NCBI RefSeq assembly: GCF_003918875.1
Contig: NW_025767357.1
Span: 1,054,001 to 1,118,000, forward strand
Source of the DNA: Haliotis rubra
Taxonomy: Eukaryota
Length of the DNA stretch: 64,000 nucleotides
Direction: 5' to 3'
Below are positions 10,644 to 51,949 of the stretch, piece after piece. The notes under the pieces were generated by a model. The model was not told where the DNA came from. It saw nothing but the letters and a program-made list of their open reading frames with translations, and ran no database searches. The number at the start of each line of letters is the position of its first letter. The first letter of the stretch is position 1. The translations under genes and the position numbers were made by a program.

Positions 10644-10795
10644 GGGCGGTAGGGTAGCCTAGTGGTTAAAGAGTCCGCCGAAGACCCGGGTTCGATTCTC
10701 CACACGGATACAATGTGTGAAGCCCATTTCTGGTGTCCTTCACCGTGATATTGCTGGAATATTGCTAAAAGCGGCGTAAAACCATACTCACTCAC
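10644..10795 (+). mobile_element. SINE family A
   Basis: Consensus match, with TSD TTTCAC(G/A)GCATGT. Confidence 0.8.
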
Positions 10796-13581: not shown

Positions 13582-14878
13582 CTAATAGAAGCTGGTATTT
13601 TCATTCCATACCGGTTCCCAGGAAGGCCCGTTAGGGTCACCGTCTTCGAAGTCGTACTCCACCACTCCAGACAACAGCTTCGCCTCCTTTGTCGTTGCAA
13701 CCTCCGGAAGACAGTCTCCTATCGGAGACTTGATTTCGCGATGATTAAAAGAATCACACTTGCCAAAGATGTTGATTCCTCTGGATGGCCAATGCCCAGT
13801 CATGAGCCGATGATTGTAAACCTTCTTCTTGTCAGAGATATCTTCAGCCCGAGCCCACTTGGCAGGCGTCATGCAGACGAACACCACAAAGCGCCACCTG
13901 TGGGAATTGAGGCGACCTTTCTCTGGTCTACAATTATCATGCACTGTCCGAGAATCCCAAAGGACCATCCCTCCTTTCGGAACTGGAACCTTAGTGGTAA
14001 CGCAGCCTTTCTCTCTGAACCAAGATTTGTCGTCTTCATTTAATTCATAATGACCGATTCTACTCTTCCTAGCAGCGGACTCAAATTCTTCAAAAAATTC
14101 GTTGAAATATTTATGTGATCCCGACAAAACCCGGAAGCAGAAGTCAGTTTCTGTCGCCTCCTCCAAATACAGGGCGCCTTGGTAACCATGGAGACCAACT
14201 CTCTCTGCCGGTTGGTCGACGTGCAACCATGCTTTCCCTGTGTCATAAATTACGAACTTTTCATCTTCTGGCGGGAAAGATATGGCTACTCCGTCAAAGC
14301 TTGTGAGGAGCTTCTCTGTCTCCCAGACATTAGCAAACACTGGCTTGGTTTTTAATCGGCAGTTCCAGGTGTTTTCGAAATGACCAATGTCATATCCCTG
14401 AATGACTGAATGCAAGTTAGAAGGCCAATCATCTTCCTCAAACTGGGATACCCAATCACGGTACTGGGATATGTACGCGTCACAGTCCTGCGCACTGCAA
14501 ACATCCGGTATTACGGCATATCCTTTCTCCTCAAGATCTTTCATAACTGAGTCCCTGATAAAGAAGGCAAAATATAATACTTTCAACACGGCAATGCAAG
14601 AGTCATCAACGAGGTAATCATGAGGTATCTGCACATGACGAATTTCTCTCTCTTGTGTCAGTGGATCAGCCTTTGTCTAGTTCGGCTTGCCGTGACTGGA
14701 TGCAAAATTGCTGATGAACAATGTTCACTCACATACTCCGATGTCCAATTGGTCATTGTTATATCGGACCGCCTCCGTGGTGTAGTCGTAAATAAATTTA
14801 AGCACGTAAAGACAGGCGTGCTGGAAGATTTACTCACCTGTCAAAAGACGGACTTCCAGGTACCTCACTTTTCGCCAT
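13582..14878 (-). CDS. PhyH-like Fe(II)/2-oxoglutarate dioxygenase, paralog 1
   Basis: Exon 1 14878-14838 (MAKSEVPGSPSFD-R, donor GTGAGT) and exon 2 14554-13582. Motifs WLHVDQ, GSH, GGMVLWDSRTVH and RWRFVVF give the HxD...H triad plus a candidate 2OG-binding Arg. Confidence 0.9.
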
Positions 14879-23967: not shown

Positions 23968-26922
23968 CTAATAGATGCTGGTATTTTCATTCCACGCCGG
24001 TTCCCAGGAAGGCCCGTTGGGTTCGCCGTCTTCGAAGTCGTACTCCACCACTCCAGACAACAGCTTCGCCTCCTTTGTCGTTGCAACCTCCGGAAGACAG
24101 TCTCCTATCGGAGACTTGATTTCGCGATGATTAAAAGGATCACATTTGTCAAAGATGTTGATTCCTCTGGATGGCCAGTGTGATGTCATCATCCTATGAT
24201 TGTAAGCCCTGAGTTTGGAGGGAATATCATCGGCCCGAGCCCACTTGGCGGGCGTCATGCAGACGAAAACTACAAAGCGCCACCTGTCGGAATTCGGGCG
24301 GCCTTTCTCTGGTCTACAATTATCATGCACTGTCCGAGAATCCCAAAGGACCATCCCTCCTTTCGGAACTGGAACCTTAGTGGTAACGCAGCCTTTCTCT
24401 CTGAACCAAGATTTGTCGTCTTCATTTAATCTATAATAATCGATTCTATTACTCTTCCTAGCAGCGGCCTCAAATTCTTCAAAGAATTCGTTGAAATATT
24501 TATGTGATCCCGACAAAACCCGGAGGCAGAAGTCAGTTTCTGTCGCCTCCTCCAAATACAGGGCGCCTTGGTAACCATGGAGACCAACTCTCTCTGCCGG
24601 TTGGTCGACGTGCAACCATGCTTTCCCTGTGTCATAAATTCCGAACTTTTCATCTTCTGGCGGAAAGGATATGGCTACTGCGTCAAAGCTTGTGAGGAGC
24701 TTCTCTGTCTCCCACACTTTAGCAAACACTGGCTTGGCTTTTAATCGACAGTTCCAGGTGTTTTCGAAATGACCAATGTCATATCCCTGAATGACTGAAT
24801 GCATGTTAGACGGCCAATCATCTTCCTCAAACTGGGACAGCCAATCACGGTACTGGGATATGTACGCGTCACAGTCCTGCGCACTGCAAACATCCGGTAT
24901 TACGGCATATCCTTTCTCCTCAAGATCTTTCATAACCGAGTCCCTGATAAAGAAGGCAAAGAAATAAGTGTAACGTTCAACACGACAAATACAAAGTCAT
25001 CAACCGTATATAATGTATCTGAAAATGGTCAGCTTGTGTGCGTTGATCAGTCTCGTCTTGTTCGGCTTGCTGATGAACTATATTCACTCACTCACTCACT
25101 TGTCCAATTGGTCATTGTTATATTCCGTCCTATTCAGTTACAAACTTAGGTGAAGTGAGTGTGTTGTAGGCCTCCTTGTAACCACACACCTTGTTATTAA
25201 CGTCGGGAACATGAGAATATACCTCGTGACCTGTGTTCTTAACGTGACCTTGGTAACTGTGTGTCATTGTACCTTCTATGTCACGTGAACTTGGCCAGAG
25301 GGTGTCACTGTACTTTCTACATCACTTTAAAAGGTCAACATTTGATTTTGAATATATTATTGTGAAGAGTGAGTGAGTGAGTTTAGTTTTACGCCTCACT
25401 CAGCAATATTCCAGGCATATGGCGGCGGTATCTAAATAATCGAGTCTGGACCAGACAATCCAGTGATCAACAGCATGAGCATCGATCTGCGCAATTGGGA
25501 ACCGATGACATGTGTCAACCAAGTCAGCGAGCCTGTCCATCCGATCCCGTTAGTCGCCTCTTACGACAAGCATAGTCGCCTTTTGTGGCAAGCATGGGTT
25601 GCTGAAGACCTATTCTACCCCGGATCTTCACGGGTCTTATTGTGAAGACTGACTGACTGAGTTTGGTTTTACGCCGCTTTTAGCAATATTCCAGCAATAT
25701 CACGGTGGGGGCACCAGAAATGGGCTTTACTAATTGTACCCATGTGGGGATTCGAACCCGGGTCTTCGGCGTGACGAGCCCACGCTTTAACCACTAGACT
25801 ACCCCACCGCCCCTTATTGTGAAGAGAGTGAGGGAATGAGTGAGTATTATTTTATGACGATTTTAGAAGTATTCCAGCTAAAAAGAGGGAAATGGACTTT
25901 ACATTTATACCAAAGTGGGAAATCGGACCAGGGGCCTTCAGTGACACCATCTGACACTGTAAAGACCCGACCTTGCAACCCCGCCGCCACTCACTTACAT
26001 CTTACTGTACCGTGTTATCTCCCTTGGACTATAGCCACAGAAATCTTATTTGCGAAATGATACACAAGGACCACCGGTCCACCTTATGATTTTATTAATA
26101 ACAGGAGTAGTAACCAAGGAAACGTAAAACGAGTACGATCACACACCTATGTGTCTCTCGTGATCTTTTTAAATGATATAGGGATATATTTATAGCAGTT
26201 CGGGGCTTTATTTCATTTTCCTTTCCAAAACAACCGGACCGGGACAAGGCTCGAGCATACAGAATTACATACATTTTGTTTCGTATTGTGTTGCCTTGTA
26301 ACAATTGTTAATGTGCTGTTGATACTGGAGACTTTGACAACTACACATGCATGACCTTGGGAGTTTGTTGCTTTTTAGTGTCTTTTTGTCATTCTATCTA
26401 TAAGGTACAGACCTCCCAGAACTCCCAACGACAAACCAGTGATTAATAACATGGAGTTCACTTTGGCAGCCAAAATATTTCAGTCGAATTTTAAGACTCC
26501 GACCATTTGTTTGCCAGATTAACTAAAAAGTACTCATAAGTTCAAATATGCTTAAGCTAGGATAAGAATCCAGAAAGATTAACGTAATAATATATTTTCA
26601 GCGAATGCTTAAAATGAGAAATAATTAGGCATGTTATAAATTGCCAAANNNNNNNNNNNNNNNNNNNNNNNNNNNNNNNNNNNNNNNNNNNNNNNNNNNN
26701 NNNNNNNNNNNNNNNNNNNNNNNNNNNNNNNNNNNNNNNNNNNNNNNNNNNNNNNNNNNNNNNNNNNNNNNNNNNNNNNNNNNNNNNNNNNNNNNNNNNN
26801 NNNNNNNNNNNNNNNNNNNNNNNNNNNNNNNGCTATCGTAAATAAATTAAGTAGGCCTACGTACAGGCAGGATTTACTAACCTGTCAAAAGACGGACTAC
26901 CAGGTACCTCACTTTTCGCCAT
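23968..26922 (-). CDS. PhyH-like Fe(II)/2OG dioxygenase, paralog 2
   Basis: Exon 1 26922-26882 (MAKSEVPGSPSFD-R, donor GTTAGT) and exon 2 24943-23968. WLHVDQ and SRTVH are intact. The intron spans an N gap. Confidence 0.88.
25367..25636 (-). mobile_element. SINE family B (duplicated-hairpin variant)
   Basis: Consensus match with TSD TTATTGTGAAGA. Confidence 0.85.
25648..25813 (-). mobile_element. SINE family A, CAGT-tail subfamily
   Basis: Consensus match with TSD TTATTGTGAAGA. Confidence 0.85.
26649..26831. other. Assembly gap
   Basis: Run of N. Confidence 1.
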
Positions 26923-28109
26923 GATGGATGGATGTGTCGTCTGCTCGTTGAGATGATCAGCGTAGAGGCAAAACTTCTAGACTGTTCTCTATGTATCTAG
27001 GAAGGGTGTTGCACAAGCCGTGGACATCTCGGGGAAAGACGGTGATAAAGATAACGATAGCCATTAGTTGATCCTATTAGTTGTGTTCGAGCGATTGTTT
27101 CCAAGGTTCATGTTCAATAATGACTATGTTCATGACCCGGAACTTGAAGTCCCCACCTCATGGGCAACAAAACACTCACTACAGTCCACCTTAAAGGAGA
27201 ATACTAGACAACTGCAATAATTTGCTTGGTGAAAGATAAAGTCATCAGAAACATGTACCCCATTTTTTATTTCAAAAATGTGGTATATTATGTTTTTATC
27301 GCGAAAACAGTTATCTGAGCTTCGGTCATTATGCATATTCCGCTGGAACTCACGTGACCTTTCCGCTCGTGACGTCATATGTGACAAGCGTCCGCCATAT
27401 TGCCAAGGAACAAGCGCTACAGTAATACAAATTGCGTTGTTTCTGTCGTTTTTGTAAATGTTACGATGGTGTATTCCGTTGCCTGGGGATGCACGGAATC
27501 ATCGAACAATGGAAAGAGCCACCATTTCTTCCGTTTTCAAGTAAAGAGACAGATTTAGGCACGATAAATGCTCCGATCACTCCGAATCGGACGCATATGA
27601 AAGCGACATGCACACAGGGGGTATGAAAATCCCAAAGCTAGGCTTAAGAGAGAAGAAGTACCCACGAGATTCATTTATACTCCATCATTCCGTTACAACT
27701 TACTGTCAGTGGTATTTTTAACATAAATTAGATTATGGATCAAATGTGAAGCTTACCAACTATCATGAGACGCACAGATTGCTAGGAAGCATTTGCCAGA
27801 TTTGTGGCGCGACCTGTGGACTAGAATATAAGGGGCGCCTGTAGACTGTAATTACACCTGGTCCCCAATCCACGAAGTGATAGAAGAGCTATGACGATTG
27901 CACCTGTTAAAAGTCTATTTGTTTATTCTTTAACACCTCATTACGTAATATGCCAGCTGTACATAGAAGTCGGTCTGTAAATAATCAAGTTTGGACCGAA
28001 CAGTCCAGTGAGTGACAGCATGAACATCGCTATTTCGAGAAGATAACAATTATCAGTGAAATCAACGAAATGGCAACCCGACTCCGTTAGTCGCCCTTGA
28101 CCAGAACTC

Positions 28110-28338
28110 GTGTAGATCCGGGTAGAATTGATCTTCAGTCACCCATGCTTGTCGTAAGAGGCGACTAACGGGATCGGGTGGTCAGACTCGCTGACTTGGC
28201 TGACACATGTCATTCTATCCCAAATGCGTAGATCGATGCTCATATTATTGATCACTGGATTGTCTGGTCCAGATTCAATTATCTGCAGACCGCCGCCATA
28301 TAACTGGAATATTGCTGAGTGCGGCGTTAAACAACGAA
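28110..28338 (+). mobile_element. SINE family B
   Basis: Consensus match. Confidence 0.8.
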
Positions 28339-28732
28339 CACACAACAAAACTCCAGACCAAAGGCATTGGTTGCTGAAGACCATGCACTGTCCTTTCTTC
28401 AGTTTTCCTGCCTCTTACGAAACTCCCGAATCTCCACTTACAGATTACACACCAAAGTTACCATATGCCCACATTCTAAATGGATGTGACTGTGTCGCTA
28501 AGTCAAGAAGCTGATCGCATAAATGTCTTCATTTATTGCTTAATACGCTAAGCGCGGGCATGTTATTCTCAGCTCCTCGCAGCGACAGGATGTTGTCTGT
28601 GGTGATCAGGACCAATACGCCACGTTGTGATAACGCTCTATACACTACTCAAAAGAATTTATAGGCCACCACGACAGATATACGATTGTAGTATGAAAGA
28701 ATCGAATGTTCTGTAACTTCTTATTAGTAGAA

Positions 28733-28896
28733 GGGGCGTTAGGATAGCCTAGTGGTTAAAGCGTTCGCTCGTCACGCCGAACACTCGGGTTCGATTCCCC
28801 ACATGGGTACAATGTGTGGAGCGCATTTCGGGTGTTCCCCGCCGTGATATAGCTGGAATGTTGATAAAAGCAGCGTAAAACGTAACTCGCTCACTC
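28733..28896 (+). mobile_element. SINE family A
   Basis: Consensus match. Confidence 0.8.
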
Positions 28897-30114
28897 GTTA
28901 TTAGAAGTAAAGCAAAGAAAACAACAAGCCTATGGACTGAAGCAGTTTTCATTGTGACATTATATGTTGTAAACGATGTCTCAGCAACCTTGATAAATCA
29001 CGCAAACAAAACACAACACAAATAATTAACACTTTTCAATAACAAGATAAAGACTTTGTTTCAAGAGTTGACGTTAGAAACGTTTCGGGCTGGATGAAAA
29101 GTTTATATCTCAGGTTTGTTTTGATTTTGTTATAATATAAACCCCCATGACTGTGTCCTGTCTAATACACAGACAGACACTTTATTCGGTAACATACGGC
29201 CTTATGGCTTATTTTACAGTTGATATATATATATAATGTATTTATAATGTCACGTGAGCACAAATTAAAGTAATTATCTAGCAATAAATATATGTTTTAA
29301 CAATGCTGCAACTGTGAAACTGTAGGATCCCTTGAGTTTTTATTAAACTGCAACTTTGACCTGTTTATAAAAGATCTAAAATTACATTATAAATACTGAA
29401 ACATACCAGAACAAATGTAAGTGAGAAAGTGAAATCTTTATGTGCATAGTGTTTAACACTTATGACAAGTGTATATCTAACTTGTGACTAACAATTGTTT
29501 AACCCCAACACCCTGGTATGTCCATCCACGTGACACTGTACAGGGGATGTAAAATCGTGGAATTGTATTGCTAATAAATGATGCAACTGCATGTATAACA
29601 AGAGGATTTTGAAAGTTTAATAACTTTAAAATTAACATATTGTTATCATGGACATGTTTAATACGTGGAAAATATTTCTCTCTCAGATCTTCATATTTAT
29701 CACAAACTAATAATACATGAAATGGTGTCCTCCCATTACGCAGACAGCCAGTTCGCAGACACCTTAAAACAACAACATTTACGGTTCAGTGAACAGATTA
29801 TCTACTACCTGATACCTATACATTATAATGGAATAGTCCAAATAAAAACACAGGAACAAACTGAAGCTATATTATTTATTTTGAAAGATGGACGAAAAGA
29901 CAGTAATTTGATTTTTTATTGCTGCAATATAAAAACAGTTTATTTTATAAACATTCCGGTTTAACTTTCTAGTCTAACGGGAATCGGCATCATCATATTG
30001 ACAACATTAGCTTAACTATTTGAAATTGCGACACTGTTCTATCATATAAATCAAATAAAGACAAATGTGAACCTAAATATTCATAGGGAATAAAGAAGTT
30101 ACATGTTTGCACAC

Positions 30115-30115
<1 letters not shown>

Positions 30116-30160
<45 letters not shown>

Positions 30161-30212
30161 GCATATATATATACACACACACACATACACACACATATAT
30201 ACATACATATAT
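30116..30212. repeat. (AT)n/(AC)n microsatellite
   Basis: Directly visible. Confidence 0.9.
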
Positions 30213-30836
30213 GAGACGAGTGCACTTAATTACGATTTATTTAGAATAAATATTTAAAATATGACGCATCATGTCAATGTGGCCATGGATGTGAGAATGT
30301 TTTTTCAATTACTTACTTGAATGTCCATTGTATACTACTCAAAGACATAAACTGTTACAATCTTTAGAAAGTATTGTTAATATTAGAACACTGATTGGTA
30401 ATTAATGTATCTTACATGGCAATGCAGGTGTCTCATTTACTGCAAATCAGAATGTTTTCAAATATGTACATATCTATATCTCTCCAACAAAACGTTTTCT
30501 CAGTTAACGTCTGTTGTACATATGCTATTATTGGGAGGGGACCTTTCTATCAATAAACACAATCAAACCTCTCAGTGACAAACCTGTTTTTATATTCGAT
30601 AGTATTTGATAGTTGAGAAGAGAAATCATTTATCATTTAATCACAACAAAGTTCTATTTACAATCAAACTTCTCAGTAACGAACCTGTTTCAGGCTCACC
30701 CTGCTCTACTCACCAGACAGTGGACTGTTCCATTATACCCGTAGGTGTGACCCTAATTAACCTTCTAGTTCAGTGTCTGTCAATTGGGTGTCTGTCAAAT
30801 GGGTGTCTGTCAAACCATTTCATCTTCAATAAAGCC

Positions 30837-33400
30837 CAATGTACATTTTGCAGATTTAATTAGATCAATATCATCTTTCTTATACCTTCTAGAAAAATTC
30901 GCTTTAAAATTGTGTAGGGGAAGTCTAAATTTACACATGGCTCTTATCTTATGGTTATTGTCTAATGATGATAAATATTTCTCCGGTTCTATAGCTGACT
31001 TAATCGAATTATAATGACATAAAAAAGGATGAAGATGAAATACTTTTGAGCCAGTTTTGATAATACATATCTTGTAATCTTTGTTTTAATGAATATAGAA
31101 ATAAATCTTCATCGCTAAAGTCTTGCGCAATCCAACCAAAAGAATACCCACAAGTAAAAAGCAAAGATCTAACATTTGAAACCCAATTACAACTGGTCTT
31201 ACTATTATCATCAAGAGTTTTTAATAAATATAGCATTGATAAGGATATCGTTGTCGTTCCACCTTTAATAATTTACACCAATATTTAACCACTCTTGGCT
31301 GAGAATGAAAAAAGCATAACGCCCTGTATCGCCTAAAATGGCCTTACTTGAAGCAAACTTCCCAACCCGTAAAAAGCGTTCAATCCAGTGTTTGCCACTG
31401 ATGTGGCAATGTCCCCCGACGCTAAAGAATGGAATATCTATATTTACTACTTTTTAATTTTTGGTCACATACAAGATAAGGTACCCAATGTCTTCAAAAC
31501 TTGTGTTCAGTGTCAAGTGACCTTGAAAATAAGGTCAAGGTCACAAAAATAAACTGGTGTCTGCGTAATCCCCCAATGTAGGCTGTCACCAATTTCAAGA
31601 CATTGGGTACAACAGTCCATGAGATGTCGCGTAACAAGAGTTTGAAAAGTGTTCATTGTCATGGTGACCTTGAAAATAAGGTCACATACAAGATGCCTGA
31701 AATGACTATTGTCTGCATAATCACCCAATGTAGGCTGTCAACATACTTGAAAACATTTGGTGCAATGTTTTATGAGATATCGCTTTTAAATAAGTTTGAA
31801 AAGCGGTCAAAGTGTCGTGGTGACCTTGAAGATAAGGTCAAGGTCACCCAAATAAACTGGTGTCTGCGTAATCTCCCACTGTAGGCTGTCACCAAATTTG
31901 AAGACATTGGATACAACAGTTCATGAGATATCGCGTTAACAAGAATCGGGACGTACCACGTCAAAACATTGATTACACAACAGTCTCGTTTCCTGTTGAC
32001 TGGTTCCCGTTCTATTGCGGAACTTAGTACAATAACCAGTCCAGACTTTTGAGACCAATTCATTTACCTGGATACATAATTATTAATCAGTATTATTTGA
32101 TACATCTAAGTACTTGTATAATGCAACACTACGCTCCTTCTAATCCTTGCAAACACGTGGTGCAACGTGCTCTGTCGTACAGCGAGCTCTGACAAACGGA
32201 AACCTGGAAATCGTGGAAATCTCAAAACGAGGCTCGGCCGCTAGAAACGTTTGGCGGTCTGGTACGGACTTGATATTATATCACTTACATTATGCGTTAC
32301 GGAACTACACTGAATACGCGCAAAGAACACATAACAGGTGTAACCAGTGAGCCAGATGCATTATGAATCATTTTACGACCTCATCAAACAGGGTCAGTCT
32401 GTGACGTCTTAGTTAAGGTCATGCTGTCTACACCTCGCCATAAAATAAAGAAATACGATATTATTAAAGTTTAAAATTATAATTCATTTGTAAATACCAT
32501 TTTCGTATGAAACAAGGAATTGGAATTCAGTGTAACCATAGTTGTTTGTGATTTCTATTTCCACTTTCACACGAGAAAATTCGGATCGGCTGAAAAGTAG
32601 GTCATTGTCTGAATAGGTTAATGAGACTCATGTTTCGGTTTGTACGGACGGACGCCGCTGAATACATATTCCCCAGTTCCGCGTTGCGGTGGGGACAATT
32701 AGATGATTGGACTTTCTCTATTGCCTCATTGTAATTAGTGCCCCATATCTCTGCCCTATATAACAAAATCGGTGCAATTTTACCATCAAAAGCAGAACAT
32801 GCTATAGAAGGTTTACATTTACAAAAAATTAAAAAATGTATATACTGGAATAACAGCTTTAGAGGCTTGTCATGCTATTGTTTACAAGATTCTGATCATG
32901 ATAATCTGGAATATATAACTAATCCTAATTACTTATAATATGTCTTAATTTCATATGCCCAGTGTTCATGCTTAGCAAGTTTACCTCCATTTATGAATAC
33001 AACGACACTTTTTTTTTTGTGAGTTGACTTCTAAACCCCATTTCTTGCAAAAGAAAGACAGTACATTTAATTGTTTCTGCAGGCAAGTAACAGTATATGA
33101 AAACATGAATACATCTTCAGCAAAAAGAACATTAAATCAACAATATCCTGTTTCACAAATACACCATAACTACACTCATTACATACTTATATACAAGTTC
33201 ATCAATGAAACAGATAAATAAAGGTGGGCTTAATATGCAACCCTGTTTCACACCACTAGAAGTGGACAACTCTTCCATTCTACCAGATGAAGGTTTAATA
33301 CATGCCTTTACAGAAGAATACATATTTCTAATGACATTAAACAATTTTCCATGACAACCTTTAGTAGGGTCTTGCTTCTTAAAATAATGACATGTTATAA
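30837..33400 (-). mobile_element. Degenerate LINE reverse transcriptase/ORF2 fragment split by an insertion
   Basis: GVKQGCILSPPLF (RT motif), AEIWG, GDTGRY, NWVSNVRSLLF and EPEKYLS motifs, with stops and frameshifts. Confidence 0.75.
31381..32699. mobile_element. Helentron-like non-autonomous element inserted in the LINE
   Basis: Internal TGACCTTGAAAATAAGGTCAAGGTCA repeats, a 3' CGGACGGACG plus CCCC...GGGG hairpin, and the LINE reading resumes on both sides. Confidence 0.6.
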
Positions 33401-33764
33401 CCAAAGCACAGACTAGTTATATATGCTGGGAGATTCTGCCACAAAACTATAAGCACCAAGCCAATTTTGTAGAGCGGATTACAGGTTCATACTAATCCCG
33501 ACATTTGGGGTAAAGGAGCTGATTAAAAAGACAATGCCAGTCATTTGTTTATAGTACATGGTTTTAAGGAACAAAATATCTTCCCTTCTCAAATCACAAA
33601 TCCGACATTGTTCAATCTCACCTGCCCAACAGATAATCCTCGGTTAGAGATATTCATTATTTCAGGCGTCCGAACGTCTTACAGTCTGAAGAATACTTGT
33701 GAGATTTATCCCCCATTCATACCACGCCCAGCTCGCTCACTCTCAGAATGACTAGTATTTTTCG

Positions 33765-36437
33765 TTAAAGACTAGTATTTTTCTTCCACACAGGTTCCCA
33801 GGAAGGTCCGTTGGGTTCACCGTCGGAAAAGTCGTACTCCTCAACTCCAGACAACAACTTGGCCTCCTTTGTCGCTGCAACTTCCGGAAGACTGTTACCG
33901 ATCGGAGATTTAATCTTACTGTGATCTGAAGGGGGATCGGACTTCTCAAAGATAATGATACCTTGGGATGGCCAATGCCCAGTCATCAGCCTATGATTGT
34001 AAGCTTTCTTCTTGTCAGAGATATCTTCAGGACGTGCCCACTTGGCGGGCGTCATGCAGACGAACACCACAAAGCGCCACCTGTCGGAATTGGGGCGGCC
34101 TTTCTCTGGTCTACAATTATCATGAACTGTCCGAGAATCCCATAGGACCATCCCTCCTTTCGGAACTGGAACCTTAGTGGTAACGCACCCTCTCTCCTTG
34201 AACCAAGATTTGTCGTCTTCCCGTAACATATAGAACTTATCGATGTTGCTTTTTTTCGCAGAGGCCTCAAATTCTTCAAAGAATGCGCTGAAATGTTTAT
34301 GTGATCCCGACAAAACACGGAAGCAGTAATCAGTTTCTGTAGTCTCCTCCAAATATAGGGCGCCTTGGTAACCATGGAGACCAATTCTTTGTGCCGGTTG
34401 GTCAAGATGAAGCCATTTTTTCCCAGTATCATACATTCCAGTTTCTCGGGCTTCGGGTGGTTCAGATATGGCTATAGCGTCAAAGCTTGTGTGAAGTTTC
34501 TCAGTCTCCCAGACTTTAGCAAATACTGGCTTGGCTTTAATGCGACAGTTCCAGGTGTTTTCGAAATGACCGACATCATAACCTTGGATTATTGAATGCC
34601 CTTGGTACGGACATTCGTCTTCCTTAAACTGGGACAGCCAATCACGGTACTGGGATATGTACATGTCACAGTCCTGCGCACTGCAAACATCCGGTATTAC
34701 GGCATACCCTTTCTCCTCCAACTCTCGAATAACTGCATCCCTGACAAGATGAAAAAAAAAAACTGTTATAAACGAGGCGATCTTGAGCAACTTACATATA
34801 TTTAAACGTGTGTTAAAACAATCGTATTCCACTTTATCCCAGATAGGAATTGTCGATTCAGCTGACAGCCGACCATCTGATATTCTGGGCACGGCTACGG
34901 AATATGTGTGCGGGTAATGTAGACAATGGAGGTCAAACCAAATATGTTTAAGGTCTGAAATACAAGCACGATCTCTATAGTGAGTGAGTGAGTATGGTTT
35001 TACGCCGCTTTTAGCTATATTCCAGCAATATCACGGCGGGGACACCAGAAATGGGCTTCACACATTGTGCCCATGTGGGGAATCGAACCCGGGTCTTCGG
35101 CGTGACGAGCCAACGCTTTAACCACTAGGCTACCCCACCGTCCCCGATCTCTATAGCCATACTGTGATGATAATGTTCCCATATTTCATAAAGGAACATC
35201 CTTGATGCCGTTCACAACCATAACATAGATACAGTGCCAACCCATGAAAAAAAATGTGTACATCAGGATTTGCTTCTGTATCATGATCAAACCACCAAAC
35301 CAATGCGTGATCAGCCGTTCATGTCGTAGTATAGATGATGGGGTACAACGTTCGCATCTCTAATGTCGTAGCCCAGTATTCCGTCCGTGAATTTAGAGCA
35401 CGTCAAAATATTGACATCCTATGACGTCATTTGCATATTGGAGTGATATATGACGTCACCCCACCCAGCAGTTCTGAATCAGCTCAGGTCTCGCTGTCAC
35501 ACCCTATAGTCTACGATGCTGCTGCTGCTGATGATGATATGTGATTATAACGCTGCGAAATTCAACTCCGGTCACTGAATCAGCCATACTGTACCGCTCC
35601 AGCATGGTGAATTATCACAGCCAGCCAACAAAGCAGTATTGTGATCTGACGAAGCAGTATTGTGATCTGAACAATCAGTATTGTGATCTGGCGAAGCTCT
35701 ATTGTGATCTGAACAAGCAGTAGTATTATCTGACTCAGTATTATTATCTGAAACAGTATTGTGATCTAACGAAGCGGTATTGTGATCTGACGAAGCAGTA
35801 TTGTGATCTGAAGCAGTATTATTATCTGAATAAGTATTCTGATCTGAAACAGTATTGTGTTCTGAAGAAGCAGTATTGTGGTCTGACGAAGCAGTATTGT
35901 GGTCTGACGAAGCGGTATTGTGGTCCGACGAAGCAGTATTGTGGTCCGACGAAGCAGTATTGTATTCTGAAGAAGCAGTATTATGATCTGAAGCAGTGTT
36001 GTGATCTAACGAAGCAGTATTGTGATCTGACGAAGCAGTATTGTGATCTAACGAAGCAGTATTGTGATCTGAAGAAGCAGTATTGTAATCTGAAGCAGTA
36101 TTATTATCTGAATAAGTATTCTTATCTGAAACAGTATTGTGTTCTGAAGAAGCAGTATTGTGATCTGACGAAGCAGTATTGTGGTCTGACGAAGCAGTAT
36201 TGTGGTCCGACGAAGCAGTATTGTATTCTGAAGAAGCAGTATTATGATCTGAAGCAGTATTGTGTCTGAAACAGTGTTGTGATCTGAAGAAGCAGTATTA
36301 TGATCTGACGAAGAAGTATCTACCTGGGCATTTGGTCGACAATAGATCAATAAATTCAGTTTGGACTGTACACTAGTATCAGTCTGAACGTACCTGTCAA
36401 AATTCGCTAGTCCTTCCACGTTGATTTCTGCCGCCAT
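33765..36437 (-). CDS. PhyH-like Fe(II)/2OG dioxygenase, paralog 3
   Basis: Exon 1 36437-36394 (MAAEINVEGLANFD-R, donor GTACGT) and exon 2 34740-33765. WLHLDQ and SRTVH are intact. Confidence 0.88.
34980..35145 (-). mobile_element. SINE family A
   Basis: Consensus match with TSD GATCTCTATAG. Confidence 0.85.
35630..36320. repeat. Intronic minisatellite, 18-21-bp unit GAAGCAGTATTGTGATCTGAC
   Basis: Directly visible tandem array. Confidence 0.92.
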
Positions 36438-40000: not shown

Positions 40001-40472
40001 TATATGTTTCTGGATATCCAGAGTTCTGTGTTCCCCGTACCGACACAACATGTGGAGTCCCGACATGATAACTGTGAAATATTGCTAAAAGCGGGAAAAG
40101 CTGACTTTCTCACTTTTCTCACTTAATCTGCAATGCAACAGCAAACAAATGTGGACTTATTCCTTTATTCCCGATCGGAAACACCCTGAATGACAGAGCT
40201 AGAGGTATTACGTGTCAGTAGAGGTATTATACCGTTCTAAGATCAGTTGTTCATAGTGACTCTTGTTCACAGATTGCACAGACTAGTATAACAAATGCTC
40301 ACAGATATATCTATTCGGGTTTTCGTAGGATAAATGCGTTTTTTATGCGAAACTGTAACCCTAGAGTCGCATTTATAATCGCACGAATATACCGTAAATA
40401 TTGTTATAACAAACCATCCTTATCTTTTAAATCTGGTTTAGTGAGAGGACACCCTGTATAGAGGTGAGTGTT

Positions 40473-42333
40473 TTACTTCCAGACGTTTTCCCAGGAAGGC
40501 CCGTTGGGTTCACCGTCGTTGAAGTCGTACTCCTCCACTCCGGACAACAACTTCGCCTCTTTTGTCGTAGCAACTTCCGGAAGACAGTCGCCGATAGGAG
40601 ATGTAATGTCGCTGAAATGTGGAGGATGGGAAGCTTCAAAAACTTGGACTCCCAGAGACGGAAAATTGTCGGTCGTCATGATTTTCTTGTAAGCCTTTTT
40701 TCTGGCTTCCATGTCACCAGGGTTAGCCCACTGCGCAGGCGTCATGGATACAAGAACCACAAAGCGCCACCTGTCAGGATTAGGGCGGCCTTTAACTGGT
40801 CTGCAATTGTCATATACTGTTCGCGAATCCCAAAGGACCATTCCTCCTTTGGGGACGGGAACCTTGGTGGCAATGCATCCTTTTTCTTTGAACCAAGCCT
40901 TTTCATCCTCCCCTAATTTATTGAATTTGTCTCTGGTACTCTTCCTGGCATTGTCTTCAAATTCTTCATAGTATGTTTCGAAGTGTTTATGTGACCCCGA
41001 CAGGACCCGGAAGCAGTAGTCCGTTTCTGACGCCTCTTCCAGAAACATTGCACCCTGGTAACCATGGAGACCAATTCTTTGTGGCGATTGGTCAGCAAGG
41101 AACAAGTCTTTCCCGTAGTCATAAATACCAAATCTTTCAGTTTCAGGTGGGAATGATACAGATACTCCTTCGAAACTTGTAAGTAGCTTCTCTGTCTCCC
41201 AAATTTTAGCAAAAACTGGCTTGGCTTTTAATCGGCAGTTCCAGGTATTTGCAAAATGACTTATATCATAACTCTGTATGACAGATTCCACTTGAAATGG
41301 CCAATCATCTTCCTCAAACTGGGACAGCCAGTCGCGGTACTGGGATATGTACGTGTCACAGTCCTGCGCACTGCAAACATCTGATATCACAGCATATCCT
41401 TTCTCCTCTAGGTCTCGTATAACAGATTCCCTGAGAACAAATATAACAAAAGGATTAAAAGCAATTAGAGTGAGTGAGTTTGGTTTTACGTCGCTATTAG
41501 CAATATTCCAGCAATATCACGGCGGGGTACACCGGAAATGGAATTCGCACATTGTACCTATGTGGGGAATCGAAAGCGGGTGTTCGGCGTGACTAGCGAA
41601 CACTTTAACCACTAGGCTACCCCACCGCCCCACAAATGCAATAAGAAGGCATTACGGTGAACATTTGCGGTAATGTATAGGTTAGTGCACAGGGGTTTGA
41701 ATCACTGTTTGGACAATAATTAAAAAAACTATGAATCTAGATTTTATATCTTATGAGTAACTTATACTTCAAATTTGAACGAAATCGGTAAACAAATGGA
41801 TTTTTTAGAAAATTCTCACGGTTGCAAAAATCTAGATTTTTATTTTTTTAAATCATTGTCGAAACAGTGATTCGACCCCCTGTGGGTTAGTACCCTGCGA
41901 CTTCGACTACCCAGCGTATGATTGCTCCGTTCTGGTATAAGCTGTACCCTGAGCCTATTCGTGAATGGAACTTGGTCTTCGATCTGACCAAACAGCCATC
42001 CAATCAGATTAACCCAATGAGAATAACAAGGAACCAATGCACAAACGAAATATTTGCTGCTTTGAAATAGTAGTTGACAACATGGAAGGAATATTTCAAC
42101 CTCTTATGAGATTTGAGAAATATATCATTCGCCTTGACTTTGAAACTAGTTGCACGGCGTTTAAGGGGTCCACAAGTATATACAGCATAGTGCATAGTGT
42201 TTGAGGGTAACATTAGGTATGATTTTTGGGGTAAATGTTTAATTTCGAACCTTTCGTTTTAACGGTATGTGATTTTTGTGTTCAAGAAGTGGAAGAACAG
42301 TTGATGTCTTCATACGACTATAGTAAATCCATC

Positions 42334-42364
<31 letters not shown>

Positions 42365-42923
42365 AAAAACACACTCAAAAACACACAGACACAATTTGAC
42401 AATGGTGACATGGCTCATTTGTTGGTAGCGCCGCAATTATCTGCGCAGAGTTGCGTCCTTTAGTCGTGCCAGAGTCGTGAGATCGAATCCAAAATGAGTC
42501 TATAAGACTACTCTTATACCCTGCTCGCATGTTTCACTCAAGTGATCTACATGTCATTTTGTCTTTCCTCCCGCATAAAGCTATTATGTTATTATTTGAC
42601 AGAAATACTGTGTTAAGCGGCTCTAAACCAAACCGGGCGATGGGGTAGCTTAGTGGTTAAAGCGTTCGCTCGTCACGCCGAAGACCCAGGTTCGATTCCC
42701 TACATTTGTACAATGTGTGAAGCCCATTTCTGGTGTCCCCCGCCGTGATATTGCTGGAATATTGCTAAAACTAAACTCACTCACTAACTCTAAACCGAGC
42801 CAGCACACCCACTCGTGGTCTGATAATCAATTCAACAAAGTGACTATCAGTGTATGAAGTACTAGTGCACGCTACCAACCTGTTGATACCGGATAGGTCA
42901 TGGATCTCGCCCTCTGACGCCAT
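40473..42923 (-). CDS. PhyH-like dioxygenase paralog 4, predicted catalytically inactive (pseudoenzyme)
   Basis: Exon 1 42923-42880 (MASEGEIHDLSGIN-R, donor GTTGGT) and exon 2 41430-40473 form an open frame. HxD has become LAD and the distal H has become Y (SRTVYDN). Confidence 0.85.
41468..41631 (-). mobile_element. SINE family A
   Basis: Consensus match. Confidence 0.8.
42635..42790 (+). mobile_element. SINE family A
   Basis: Consensus match. Confidence 0.8.
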
Positions 42924-43470
42924 CTCATACAGGTGATGTGTCGCTGCACGTCAAGGGTAAATGTTGAAAACTATTGCTGTACCCAGCCCCCGATGTAAAA
43001 GGAAGTTCTAGGTTGTGCCATCGCTTTTTACTGTCCGGAGCATATTGCACAATTTGGTGAAACCTACCCACAAGGGTATAAATAGCACACTATGATTTTA
43101 TCTATAGACTGTTACCTAGTCTACTACTGAGACGCAGCTTGAGCGGGAACCAGTTCAAAGTGAAAGCGCGATATCGGTTTTGTTCGGACGAATGTTTTGT
43201 GAAAAACGGAGAAGCTGTCACATTCACTCTCTTTTCACATATCGTTTAGATTTCGACTTTGAAAACAGATTTACCCATACAACCATTTGTAACAAATTAA
43301 TGCCTAAAACATAGTTGTGAAATTACGAGTGAGGATGGTTTGGCTTGGCTGTAAATATTATATGGTATATCACAACGATCTCGGCTGCATGTAGAATTAT
43401 TCCAAGACGTTTACCATATTTGGTGGAACCCACGTGGACAGGTACCGTGCTGGCAAGCCCTGAAACAAAA

Positions 43471-49522: not shown

Positions 49523-51949
49523 TTAGGTCATCGTGTGGTCCCATTCGGGTTCCCAACCGGGGCCATTTGATTGGCCATCATCAAAATCGTACTCGTCCAC
49601 AGCAGCCAATAGGCGAGCAGAGGGAGTACTTCCTTCTAGAGGGATTCCTTCTGGCGGCATGACGTCAACACAATACATAGGATCGCCATTGTGCTTTGGC
49701 TGGTTGCTCTTAAACACTTCTGTTTCCTGAGAAGCCCAGTGATTGGTCAATTTAATTTCATTATAGGCACCTGCACGTTTCTGTTTGTCTTTATCAGCTG
49801 CCCAATGAGCAGGCATCATGCAGATAAAGACGACCCAGCGCCACCTATCGTCATGAGGACGCCCGAGAACTGGTGGGACATTATCGTGGACGGTTCTCGA
49901 GTCCCAAAGCACGACCCCGCCTTTTGGGACTGAAACTTTGACTTCTTCGCAACCCCGTTTCTCATACCACGCAGTTTGAGGTTTCGTAAGCCTGTAGAAC
50001 TCGCTCTTCAAGCTCCTTTTCCTGGCGTTGTCGAAATGGCTGAAAAATTCCTCGAAGTATCGGTGTGAATGTGACAATACTCTGAAGCAATGGTCCATTT
50101 CTGTCGCTTCTTCGAGATACAGAGCCCCCTGGTAGCCATGGAGACCTTTCCTCGACGGCTTCTGGTCGAGGTGAAACCATTTCTTGCCCTCATCAAAGAC
50201 TCCATCAGCCTCCTCAGGCGGCCTCGATATAGCAACGCCATCAAAACTAGACAGGAGTTTCTCCGTATCCCAGACCGAGGCGTACACTGGTTTGACCTTC
50301 AACCTCGCAGACCACGAGGCCCCAAAGTGTCCAATCCGGTACTGGTGTATAATTGACCTTCGACTCTTTGGGAAGTCGCCATTTTGAAATGTTCCAAGCC
50401 ATGATTTGTATTGTCCAATCAGCTCATCGCATTCTTTGGCAGTTATGACGTCAGGAATGACACAATATCCTTTTGTTGCCAGTTCCTTTTTCGTTGCTTC
50501 GCTGCAATCAAACAGATGTATTTCAAATATTACGCAAATGCTAAATGGAAATACTTCCCATACAGGCATCGGGTAACTGAAACTCTGAAACAGATCGGTC
50601 CCGTTCCCGTAAAAAACGTCCGGAATGTATTAAAATGTATTAAAAATTAAAATGGGCCCAGAATGAGCATACGTTATAAAATACTTCCTTTCCAGTCGCT
50701 ATACTTAGAAATGTTGTAATTAACACCTGTCTAAAGATTCATTTAAAAACTGCTAAACACTTTCAGGAAATCAAAATAATTATTTGGAACTGGATATAAA
50801 TTAGCACCTGCCGATCTGATTTTAAAGAAATATATAAAGAACAAAAAATATAAAGTCCGGTCTATCATAGCATGGGGCGTGGGGAAGACCAGTGGGTAAA
50901 GCGTTCGCTCGTCCCGGGTTCGATTCCCAACATGGGTACAATGTGTGAATCCCATTTCAGGTGTCCCTCTCCGTGATACGTGATATTGCTGGAATATTGC
51001 TAAAAGCGGCGTAAACCCCAACTCACTCACGCACGCACTCACTCACTCACTCACTCACTCACTCACGCACTCACTCACTATCATAGCATCCTCGCAATAA
51101 ATCTCTCTTACAGACCCTACACAATATGAATAAAGAGACCTTGACTCACATCCACTGACCTTTTCTCAGCTCAAGCATCATATAAATGCATTCCTACATA
51201 TAATATATATATATATATATACATGGCTATACGACCGTTTGGCGACATCCTGCTCGCTGCCCGTATAAATGCATTCTGTGAAACAAACCTATTTTACAGT
51301 TACTCTTTTATTAGGACTCAACAACGATTAACCATTCACACCAGCTACGGCCGAACACATTGACGTGCACGACATGTACTTTCCCGTACAGTGAGTGACC
51401 TTTGTTTTACGCCACTTACTACTATTCCTGCGATACTGCGACAATGAGCACTAGAAATTGGTTTCACACATTTTACATTTTACCCATGTAGGGAATTAAA
51501 CCCGGGACTTAGCCAGGCTACCCTGCTGTTGTAAAACAGGGTGCATTTACGTGCTTGTTATGTCTCCTAATCAACAGTAATCGTGCTATTGTCAATACGG
51601 AATCAACGTCTAGACTTTTAATCAATAAAACTTGACAAATTTATCCAACACCCGGGGTGGTGGGGCAGCCTAGTGGTTAAAGCGTTCGCTCGTCACGCCG
51701 AAAACCCGGGTTCGATTCTCCACATGGGTACAATGTGTGAAGCCCATTTCTGGTGTCATTGCTGACATTGCTGGAATATTGCTAAAAGCGGCGTTAAACG
51801 TAACTCAATCAATATCCAACACCCGATTACCATAAACAACTTTCAGCAATATGTCAACACATTTTCAGAGTAACACAACACTGTACAACGACAAGTCGAA
51901 CATTAGTTCAAATATTCTACCTGTCAATTGAAAGCGCTGACTCCGCCAT
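49523..51949 (-). CDS. PhyH-like Fe(II)/2OG dioxygenase, paralog 5 (most divergent)
   Basis: Exon 1 51949-51921 (MAESALSID-S, donor GTAGAA) and exon 2 50501-49523. WFHLDQ, GGVVLWDSRTVH and RWRWVVF are intact. Confidence 0.87.
50874..51078 (+). mobile_element. SINE family A with a long (ACTC)n tail
   Basis: Consensus match with TSD CTATCATAGCAT. Confidence 0.8.
51654..51811 (+). mobile_element. SINE family A
   Basis: Consensus match with TSD TATCCAACACCC. Confidence 0.8.

Follow-up and report, generated by a model that had tools for sequence, protein, structure and literature searches.

A probable pseudoenzyme within a tandem array of PhyH-type oxygenase genes in Haliotis rubra: conserved, transcribed and without the two histidines of the predicted iron site

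The stretch of DNA analyzed here (the window) comprises 64,000 nucleotides of the abalone Haliotis rubra (assembly GCF_003918875.1, contig NW_025767357.1, positions 1,054,001 to 1,118,000) and carries five paralogous genes, arranged head to tail on the minus strand, with main exons that end at 13582, 23968, 33765, 40473 and 49523. The fourth gene of the array, termed paralog 4, corresponds to LOC124257098, which is annotated as an “uncharacterized protein” of 333 amino acids encoded by two exons. According to the evidence presented below, paralog 4 is very probably a conserved, transcribed and spliced pseudoenzyme, in which the fold of a PhyH-type oxygenase is retained without Fe(II)/2-oxoglutarate (2OG) catalysis. 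The features of the gene, in the direction of transcription, are as follows.

42924..43030, minus strand: 5' untranslated region, minimum extent; transcript contigs reach 43030 (run X3), 42987 (run X1) and 42969 (run X15)
42880..42923, minus strand: coding part of exon 1, ATG...CAACAG and then the GT donor; encodes MASEGEIHDLSGIN plus 2 bases
41431..42879, minus strand: sole intron (GT...AG), 1449 bp; absent from the X1, X3 and X15 contigs
40473..41430, minus strand: coding part of exon 2, with the PhyH domain; acceptor ttctcag, then G; residues 15-333; TAA stop at 40473-40475
41097..41099, minus strand: CTT, Leu126, at the position of the HxD histidine; CTT also in H. asinina, H. rufescens and H. 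cracherodii
41091..41093, minus strand: GAC, Asp128, kept carboxylate of the former HxD motif; Asp in 118 of 118 family sequences
40812..40814, minus strand: TAT, Tyr221, at the position of the distal histidine; TAT or TAC in the orthologs
40764..40766, minus strand: CGC, Arg237, kept invariant Arg, 16 residues past the distal position; Arg in 118 of 118 family sequences
40662..40667, minus strand: AAT TTT, Asn270-Phe271, in place of the near-invariant His-Trp of the MTxHWPS motif; H. rufescens keeps His270 and has Phe271
40300..40472, minus strand: 3' untranslated region; contigs extend past 40300 by ~90-150 more bases

The spliced product of the two coding parts (42923-42880 joined to 41430-40473) is 100% identical to the protein XP_046547044.1, its frame is uninterrupted over 333 codons, and the intron ends are GT and AG. 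An earlier note on this DNA, made from the letters alone, had described an intact frame, splice sites, first exon and scaffold without stops, and this description was borne out in full, including the splice, which was seen in transcript contigs. In three public runs from two studies (X1, X3 and X15), a single contig of 1352-1378 nt begins at 42969, 42987 or 43030, continues to 42879 and is then gapless from 41429 to 40300. Since these contigs join exon 1 directly to exon 2, they represent spliced mRNA with 5' and 3' untranslated regions. The records of the runs carry no RNA label, and it is the spliced form that indicates the derivation of the contigs from RNA; they document the presence of the mRNA, neither its level nor the tissue of origin.

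All five paralogs exceed the gathering score of the Pfam family PhyH (PF05721). Paralog 4 scores 32.5 bits (cut-off 22, E=1.4e-7) and the others 34-43 bits. An AlphaFold (AF2) model of paralog 4, built from the family alignment, reached a pLDDT (predicted local distance difference test score) of 92.3 and a pTM (predicted template modelling score) of 0.91, and shows the double-stranded beta-helix fold of solved PhyH-type oxygenases. Foldseek matched it with probability 1.0 to proline hydroxylase H11, AviO1, SnoK/SnoN, GriE, PtlH, EctD and PHYHD1. In VIA-align, the Z scores were 18-20 for the DUF1479 proteins GIG2 and YbiU (265-282 residues aligned), and 16-17.6 for ColD, GriE, SnoN, OkaE, KanJ, PrhA and the TlxIJ heterodimer.

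The canonical pattern of PhyH-type Fe(II)/2OG oxygenases is H-x-D...H...R. In the family of paralog 4 the corresponding residues are spaced as H126-x-D128, followed by 95 residues, H221, 16 residues and R237, which fits that pattern. The predicted metal ligands are thus H126, D128 and H221, as judged from the unambiguous motif, the Pfam membership and the fold match. Searches of PDB sequences with a single active paralog and with a profile of the 118-sequence family (up to E=10) gave no usable match, so that the assignment is motif-based. By analogy, Arg237 is presumed to bind the C5-carboxylate of 2OG, and paralog 4 retains this basic residue.

At both histidine positions paralog 4 departs from the family. 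Where its neighbours read LH(V/L)DQ and TVHDN, it reads FLADQ and TVYDN, and the codons CTT at 41097-41099 and TAT at 40812-40814, named in the earlier note, proved to be correct. Because the neighbouring paralogs carry CAT or CAC at both positions, Leu126 and Tyr221 each lie one base step from a histidine codon, again as stated there. The family alignment consists of paralog 4 and 117 relatives from molluscs, a chiton, a brachiopod and transcriptomes. His is present in column 126 in 115 of its 118 sequences; Leu occurs solely in the three paralog-4 orthologs, and all of the remaining 115 members have His. In column 221, His is found in 114 of 118 sequences (114 of the 115 outside paralog 4); the four Tyr residues belong to the paralog-4 orthologs of the three species and to a single unrelated member. 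The invariant Asp128 and Arg237, and R235 (113 of 118), are all kept in paralog 4.

Two further replacements had been listed in the earlier note. That of T(G/S)HWPS by TDNFPS is real and affects near-invariant residues (H270 in 116 and W271 in 114 of the 118 sequences). The replacement of HSVIQ by ESVIQ is likewise real; it carries no weight, since its column (H63) is variable, with His in 32 of 118 sequences and Glu in 10.

Conservation of at least 90% among the other 115 members was found in 68 columns. The paralog-4 orthologs deviate at 7-8 of these, as against a family median of 2 and a maximum of 8. Five of the deviations (D102E, H126L, Y144F, H221Y and W271F) are fixed in the three species, versus 0-1 in the sister Haliotis clades, and five further conserved columns (F88, W124, D254, H270 and P330) are variable inside the paralog-4 clade. 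About 60 of the 68 conserved positions are kept, including D128, H137, Q140, R218, R235 and R237. Within paralog 4 itself, changes were found in 5 of the 68 conserved columns versus 50 of the remaining 265 (p=0.03).

Paralog 4 differs from paralogs 1-3 at ∼30% of its residues, and 22 of the differences are fixed. Several of these adjoin the two motifs (positions 125, 126, 130 and 131; 221 and 227; 258-283). The claim that the changes concentrate on active-site residues therefore stands in part: only 5 of the 22 fixed differences fall in family-conserved columns, but even this number exceeds the 0-1 of the sister clades. From the alignment, the pocket of paralog 4 looks remodelled rather than abandoned. 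The facial triad of two histidines and one carboxylate (HxD/E...H) is absent, the sequence being L126-A-D128...Y221 in all four Haliotis species in which the gene was found.

The only other family member with a distal Tyr is P0113, an ENA protein of 320 amino acids (H-D-Y), which deviates at 8 conserved columns and may, to judge by its sequence, be a second, independent inactive or variant member. A separate case is P0136 (H. rufescens LOC124144409), in which HVE stands in place of HVD, a normal variant of the triad.

The 90% protein cluster of paralog 4 contains two more members, XP_067658991.1 (P0121) from H. asinina, with 93% identity, and XP_046369741.1 (P0122) from H. rufescens, with 86%. 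Both are intact proteins of 333 amino acids with FLADQ, TVYDN, ESVIQ and Phe271, such that Leu126 and Tyr221 are shared across species, one of the checks that the earlier note had proposed. As in H. rubra, the gene has the ortholog of paralog 5 on one side and that of paralog 3 on the other in both species, and the order of the array is kept in the three species. In codon and protein trees alike, the three paralog-4 orthologs form one clade (100/100 support), nested in an expansion specific to Haliotis, which comprises paralogs 1-4 and has caenogastropod sequences as its sister group. Paralog 5 and the LOC124257145-type genes fall into an older clade. The protein stem leading to the paralog-4 clade (0.25) has 3-7 times the length of those leading to its sister clades. 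Gene conversion as the cause of the intact frame was considered and rejected: the orthologs cluster by paralog (100% support), and converted copies would have regained the His codons.

An unannotated fourth ortholog was detected in the genome of H. cracherodii (GCA_022045235.1), with exon 1 at L004:4369-4413 and exon 2 at L004:6353-7316. Its exon 2 differs from that of H. rufescens at 19 of 955 aligned positions (∼98% identity), and the two share the Leu and Tyr codons. The differences between these two species amount to 8 synonymous versus 9 non-synonymous codons.

Selection on exon 2 was estimated pairwise by the Goldman-Yang method. Among the paralog-4 orthologs the ratio of non-synonymous to synonymous rates (dN/dS, omega) was 0.12-0.17, and the likelihood-ratio test against omega=1 gave p from 4e-14 to 2e-25. 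The active paralogs are comparable (0.14-0.17 for paralog 3 and 0.08 for paralog 2), while paralog 5 (49523-50500; orthologs at L002:3970-4968 and L003:5608-6627), which keeps the triad, evolves faster than paralogs 2-4 (0.24-0.33). In a branch model on a 12-gene tree, computed with our own pruning implementation and the likelihood summed over ancestors, omega was 0.146 in the paralog-4 crown, which is far from 1 (2dlnL=129, p=6e-30) and does not differ from the background of 0.189 (p=0.16). On the stem branch, to which the elevation of dN/dS is confined, omega was unbounded, above background (p=0.006) and indistinguishable from 1 (p=0.5). The raised stem omega, the long stem and the low crown omega together indicate a relaxed or adaptive burst after duplication, in which both histidines were lost, and then ordinary purifying selection. 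Among the three orthologs ∼0.27-0.56 substitutions per codon have accumulated, and ∼5% of point changes in the coding sequence would yield a stop; three intact frames over such divergence are not expected of neutral sequence.

The contigs of four runs from the two studies (X1, X3, X15 and X17) share the same seven differences from the coding sequence of the window: four non-synonymous (D48E, I134V, S243T and G253N), two synonymous and one double change in a single codon. V134 and T243 match H. asinina. Either the shared allele is a common one, or the runs derive from a sister taxon filed under the same organism name. None of the differences falls at 41097-41099 or 40812-40814. Sequencing error was rejected as the source of the Leu and Tyr codons, given the same codons in other Haliotis genomes and in the transcript contigs.

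The surroundings of the gene offer several additional observations. A pyrimidine-rich AG acceptor occurs at the same codon in all five paralogs, directly before a (D/E)xVxxxLExKGY motif. A scan for exon-1-like sequences (at least 30 of 44 identities) recovered only the first exon of paralog 4 itself, and those of the other paralogs were placed by means of the N-termini of the NCBI proteins. The intron of paralog 4 contains two copies of a tRNA-derived short interspersed element (SINE), ∼1 kb apart and in opposite orientation (41470-41640, minus strand; 42640-42790, plus strand), one of which stops ∼40 nt short of the acceptor. Base pairing between the opposed copies is conceivable in the pre-mRNA. 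The contigs pile up over them to an enormous depth, consistent with a repeat that occurs genome-wide. A microsatellite of the (GT)n / GTTTTTGAGTGT type at 42330-42390, in the same intron, was treated as a repeat in read placement. Further SINE heads lie at 10652, 28742, 35135, 38459, 45544 and 56084, that at 35135 in the equivalent place upstream of exon 2 of paralog 3. In the NCBI models, paralogs 2 and 3 (23968-36437) are isoforms of one gene, LOC124257096, whose isoform X2 (P0126) resembles paralog 3 at its start and paralog 2 at its end; either the tandem paralogs are joined by read-through or chimeric splicing, or the model is an artefact. A run of N occupies 26649-26831.

The sequence of events can be reconstructed as follows. 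Paralog 4 would have arisen as a tandem duplicate among genes for PhyH-type Fe(II)/2OG oxygenases, and the changes of His126 to Leu and His221 to Tyr in its iron site would have preceded the divergence of the sampled Haliotis species. Thereafter it has been retained as a protein-coding gene, on which purifying selection has acted as strongly as on the active paralogs beside it; the function so preserved presumably depends on the fold and on a large part of the old pocket. Leucine cannot ligate iron, so that no facial triad would be formed and Fe(II)/2OG catalysis is probably lost. At the same time, the retention of Asp128, Arg218, Arg235, Arg237, His137, Gln140 and most other conserved positions suggests that the pocket is still constrained.

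The interpretation in the earlier note, namely an intact pseudoenzyme and not a decaying copy, is upheld by the Leu and Tyr shared among intact syntenic orthologs, the omega of 0.12-0.17 and the spliced mRNA. Loss of catalytic residues, purifying selection across species and expression (as mRNA), which characterize a pseudoenzyme, are each demonstrated for paralog 4, whereas the marks of a pseudogene, disabling mutations or an omega near 1, are absent, with the exception of the 1-bp insertion in the H. cracherodii copy. A young pseudogene, in which no stop or frameshift has yet appeared, could account for the absence of both catalytic histidines and for a stem omega indistinguishable from 1, and the H. 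cracherodii copy does have a broken frame ∼75 codons before its end. Nevertheless, the two substitutions are old, being common to four species, and the intact frames at the observed divergence, the rejection of neutrality in the crown and the correctly spliced mRNA refute this explanation for H. rubra, H. asinina and H. rufescens; it is therefore very improbable. The chance that both codons are assembly or sequencing errors, or alleles of the reference animal, is negligible: the same codons are found in three other, independently assembled Haliotis genomes, and the contigs of the four runs differ from the window elsewhere but at neither codon.

A more serious alternative is that paralog 4 is still an enzyme, either with an atypical metal site (e.g., Asp128, Tyr221 and new ligands) or with metal-independent chemistry in the old pocket. 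Strong purifying selection and the kept pocket residues (Asp128, Arg218, Arg237, His137 and Gln140) would fit any pocket-dependent function, and the unrelated P0113 is likewise H-D-Y. There are precedents as well: PHF2-type JmjC proteins tolerate the distal change of His to Tyr, two protein ligands suffice for AspH, and metal-free isomerases are known among cupin-fold proteins. Leu126, however, offers no group that could coordinate a metal, so that no more than Asp and Tyr remain, and we are aware of no Fe(II)/2OG oxygenase that functions with both histidines missing. Moreover, near-invariant neighbours are altered or free to vary (W124, Y144F, H270N and W271F), as is expected once catalytic geometry stops mattering. 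Residual or new catalysis is thus considered improbable.

Several points weigh against the view of paralog 4 as a conserved pseudoenzyme and against the roles suggested for it. Expression is documented at the mRNA level only; the ligands were assigned from motif and fold; and no more than three or four species supplied orthologs. In H. cracherodii, the ortholog has a 1-bp insertion (an extra A in a run of A, near codon 259) that puts its last ∼75 residues out of frame, together with D32N and D234N at otherwise conserved positions. Black abalone may have lost the gene recently, or the insertion may be a homopolymer error of sequencing or assembly; at least one lineage may accordingly be able to dispense with the gene, and the finding in the other three species is unaffected. 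Finally, paralog 4 keeps the Arg presumed to bind 2OG, in contrast to TlxI (see below), and the two non-catalytic roles considered next are hypotheses.

Within the reading of paralog 4 as a non-catalytic protein, most likely a partner or a ligand binder, the role ranked first, held tentatively and at less than even chances, is that of a binding subunit that would pair with the adjacent active paralogs, as the fungal proteins TlxI and TlxC do with TlxJ and TlxA. Whether it might be an obligate subunit, in a heterodimer with the neighbouring active oxygenases in which it shapes the substrate pocket or specificity, is rather doubtful. Ranked second, and only slightly lower, is a protein that would act on its own to bind or sense 2OG or the substrate of the family. 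Catalysis, as discussed above, comes third, and the remaining weight belongs to other non-catalytic roles and the rival explanations. Both Arg237 and Asp128, which proteins of the TlxI type can do without, are kept, and this tips the balance a little in favour of a protein that still binds 2OG or a related acid.

The case is of interest in several respects. It would mean that the PhyH fold, in an uncharacterized family expanded in molluscs, has a selectable function independent of iron chemistry. A natural pseudoenzyme with clean evolutionary evidence (an old double loss of ligands, renewed constraint and expression) provides a useful entry point, and paralog 4 could serve as a negative control or as a partner when the activity of the active paralogs is probed. 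Literature searches on the PhyH-like family in abalone or molluscs, and on 2OG oxygenase pseudoenzymes, produced nothing specific and no paper that treats this gene; those on DUF1479/Gig2 mostly returned an unrelated fish gene that shares the name.

Compared with its own neighbours, paralog 4 is 69-70% identical to paralogs 1-3 and 49% identical to paralog 5, and the two-exon structure, the position of the acceptor and the fold are common to all; it differs from them in the alteration of H-x-D...H, H270 and W271, which the others keep. The best structural matches, GIG2 and YbiU (DUF1479, PF07350; 6AKZ, 4RGK, 2CSG and 2DBI), are only 10-15% identical and give no match at the sequence level, although one family member has a precomputed PF07350 match, and their own functions are poorly known. 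Dead members of the 2OG-oxygenase superfamily are already familiar. The JmjC proteins JARID2 and PHF2/Epe1-type have lost metal ligands, are conserved and act by binding or scaffolding; PHF2 retains the first His and can still bind iron. The PHF2/Epe1-type proteins share with paralog 4 the same distal His-to-Tyr substitution, but the JmjC proteins are chromatin proteins of another subfamily. What is new here is a well-supported case of such a member in an animal PhyH-type family, with both histidines replaced.

The closest parallel in arrangement is found in fungal talaromyolide biosynthesis, where the catalytically incompetent Fe(II)/2OG-oxygenase paralogs TlxI and TlxC occur beside the active TlxJ and TlxA (PMC12141560). 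TlxI and TlxC heterodimerize with their partners and supply a loop to the partner's substrate site, by which kcat/Km rises from 0.02 to 1.63 per min per uM, i.e., ∼80-fold (PMC12141560). Like paralog 4, they have the PhyH-type double-stranded beta-helix (PDB 7VBQ; Z 16.6 for the paralog 4 model versus 7vbq_B), are encoded beside active paralogs, and have lost an essential Fe/2OG catalytic residue while the gene was kept. The residues concerned differ, in that TlxI lacks the 2OG-binding Arg, whereas paralog 4 keeps R237 and the Asp and lacks both iron-ligand histidines. Sequence identity is ∼10%, the hosts are a fungus and an animal, and the heterodimer known for the Tlx proteins is a hypothesis for paralog 4. 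If the partner model holds, the arrangement of a dead subunit beside a live paralog, described for fungal biosynthetic clusters, would extend to an animal tandem array; and were paralog 4 an obligate subunit, it would form the first animal pair of the TlxI/TlxJ type, dead plus live, and offer a handle on the chemistry of a large lophotrochozoan oxygenase family.

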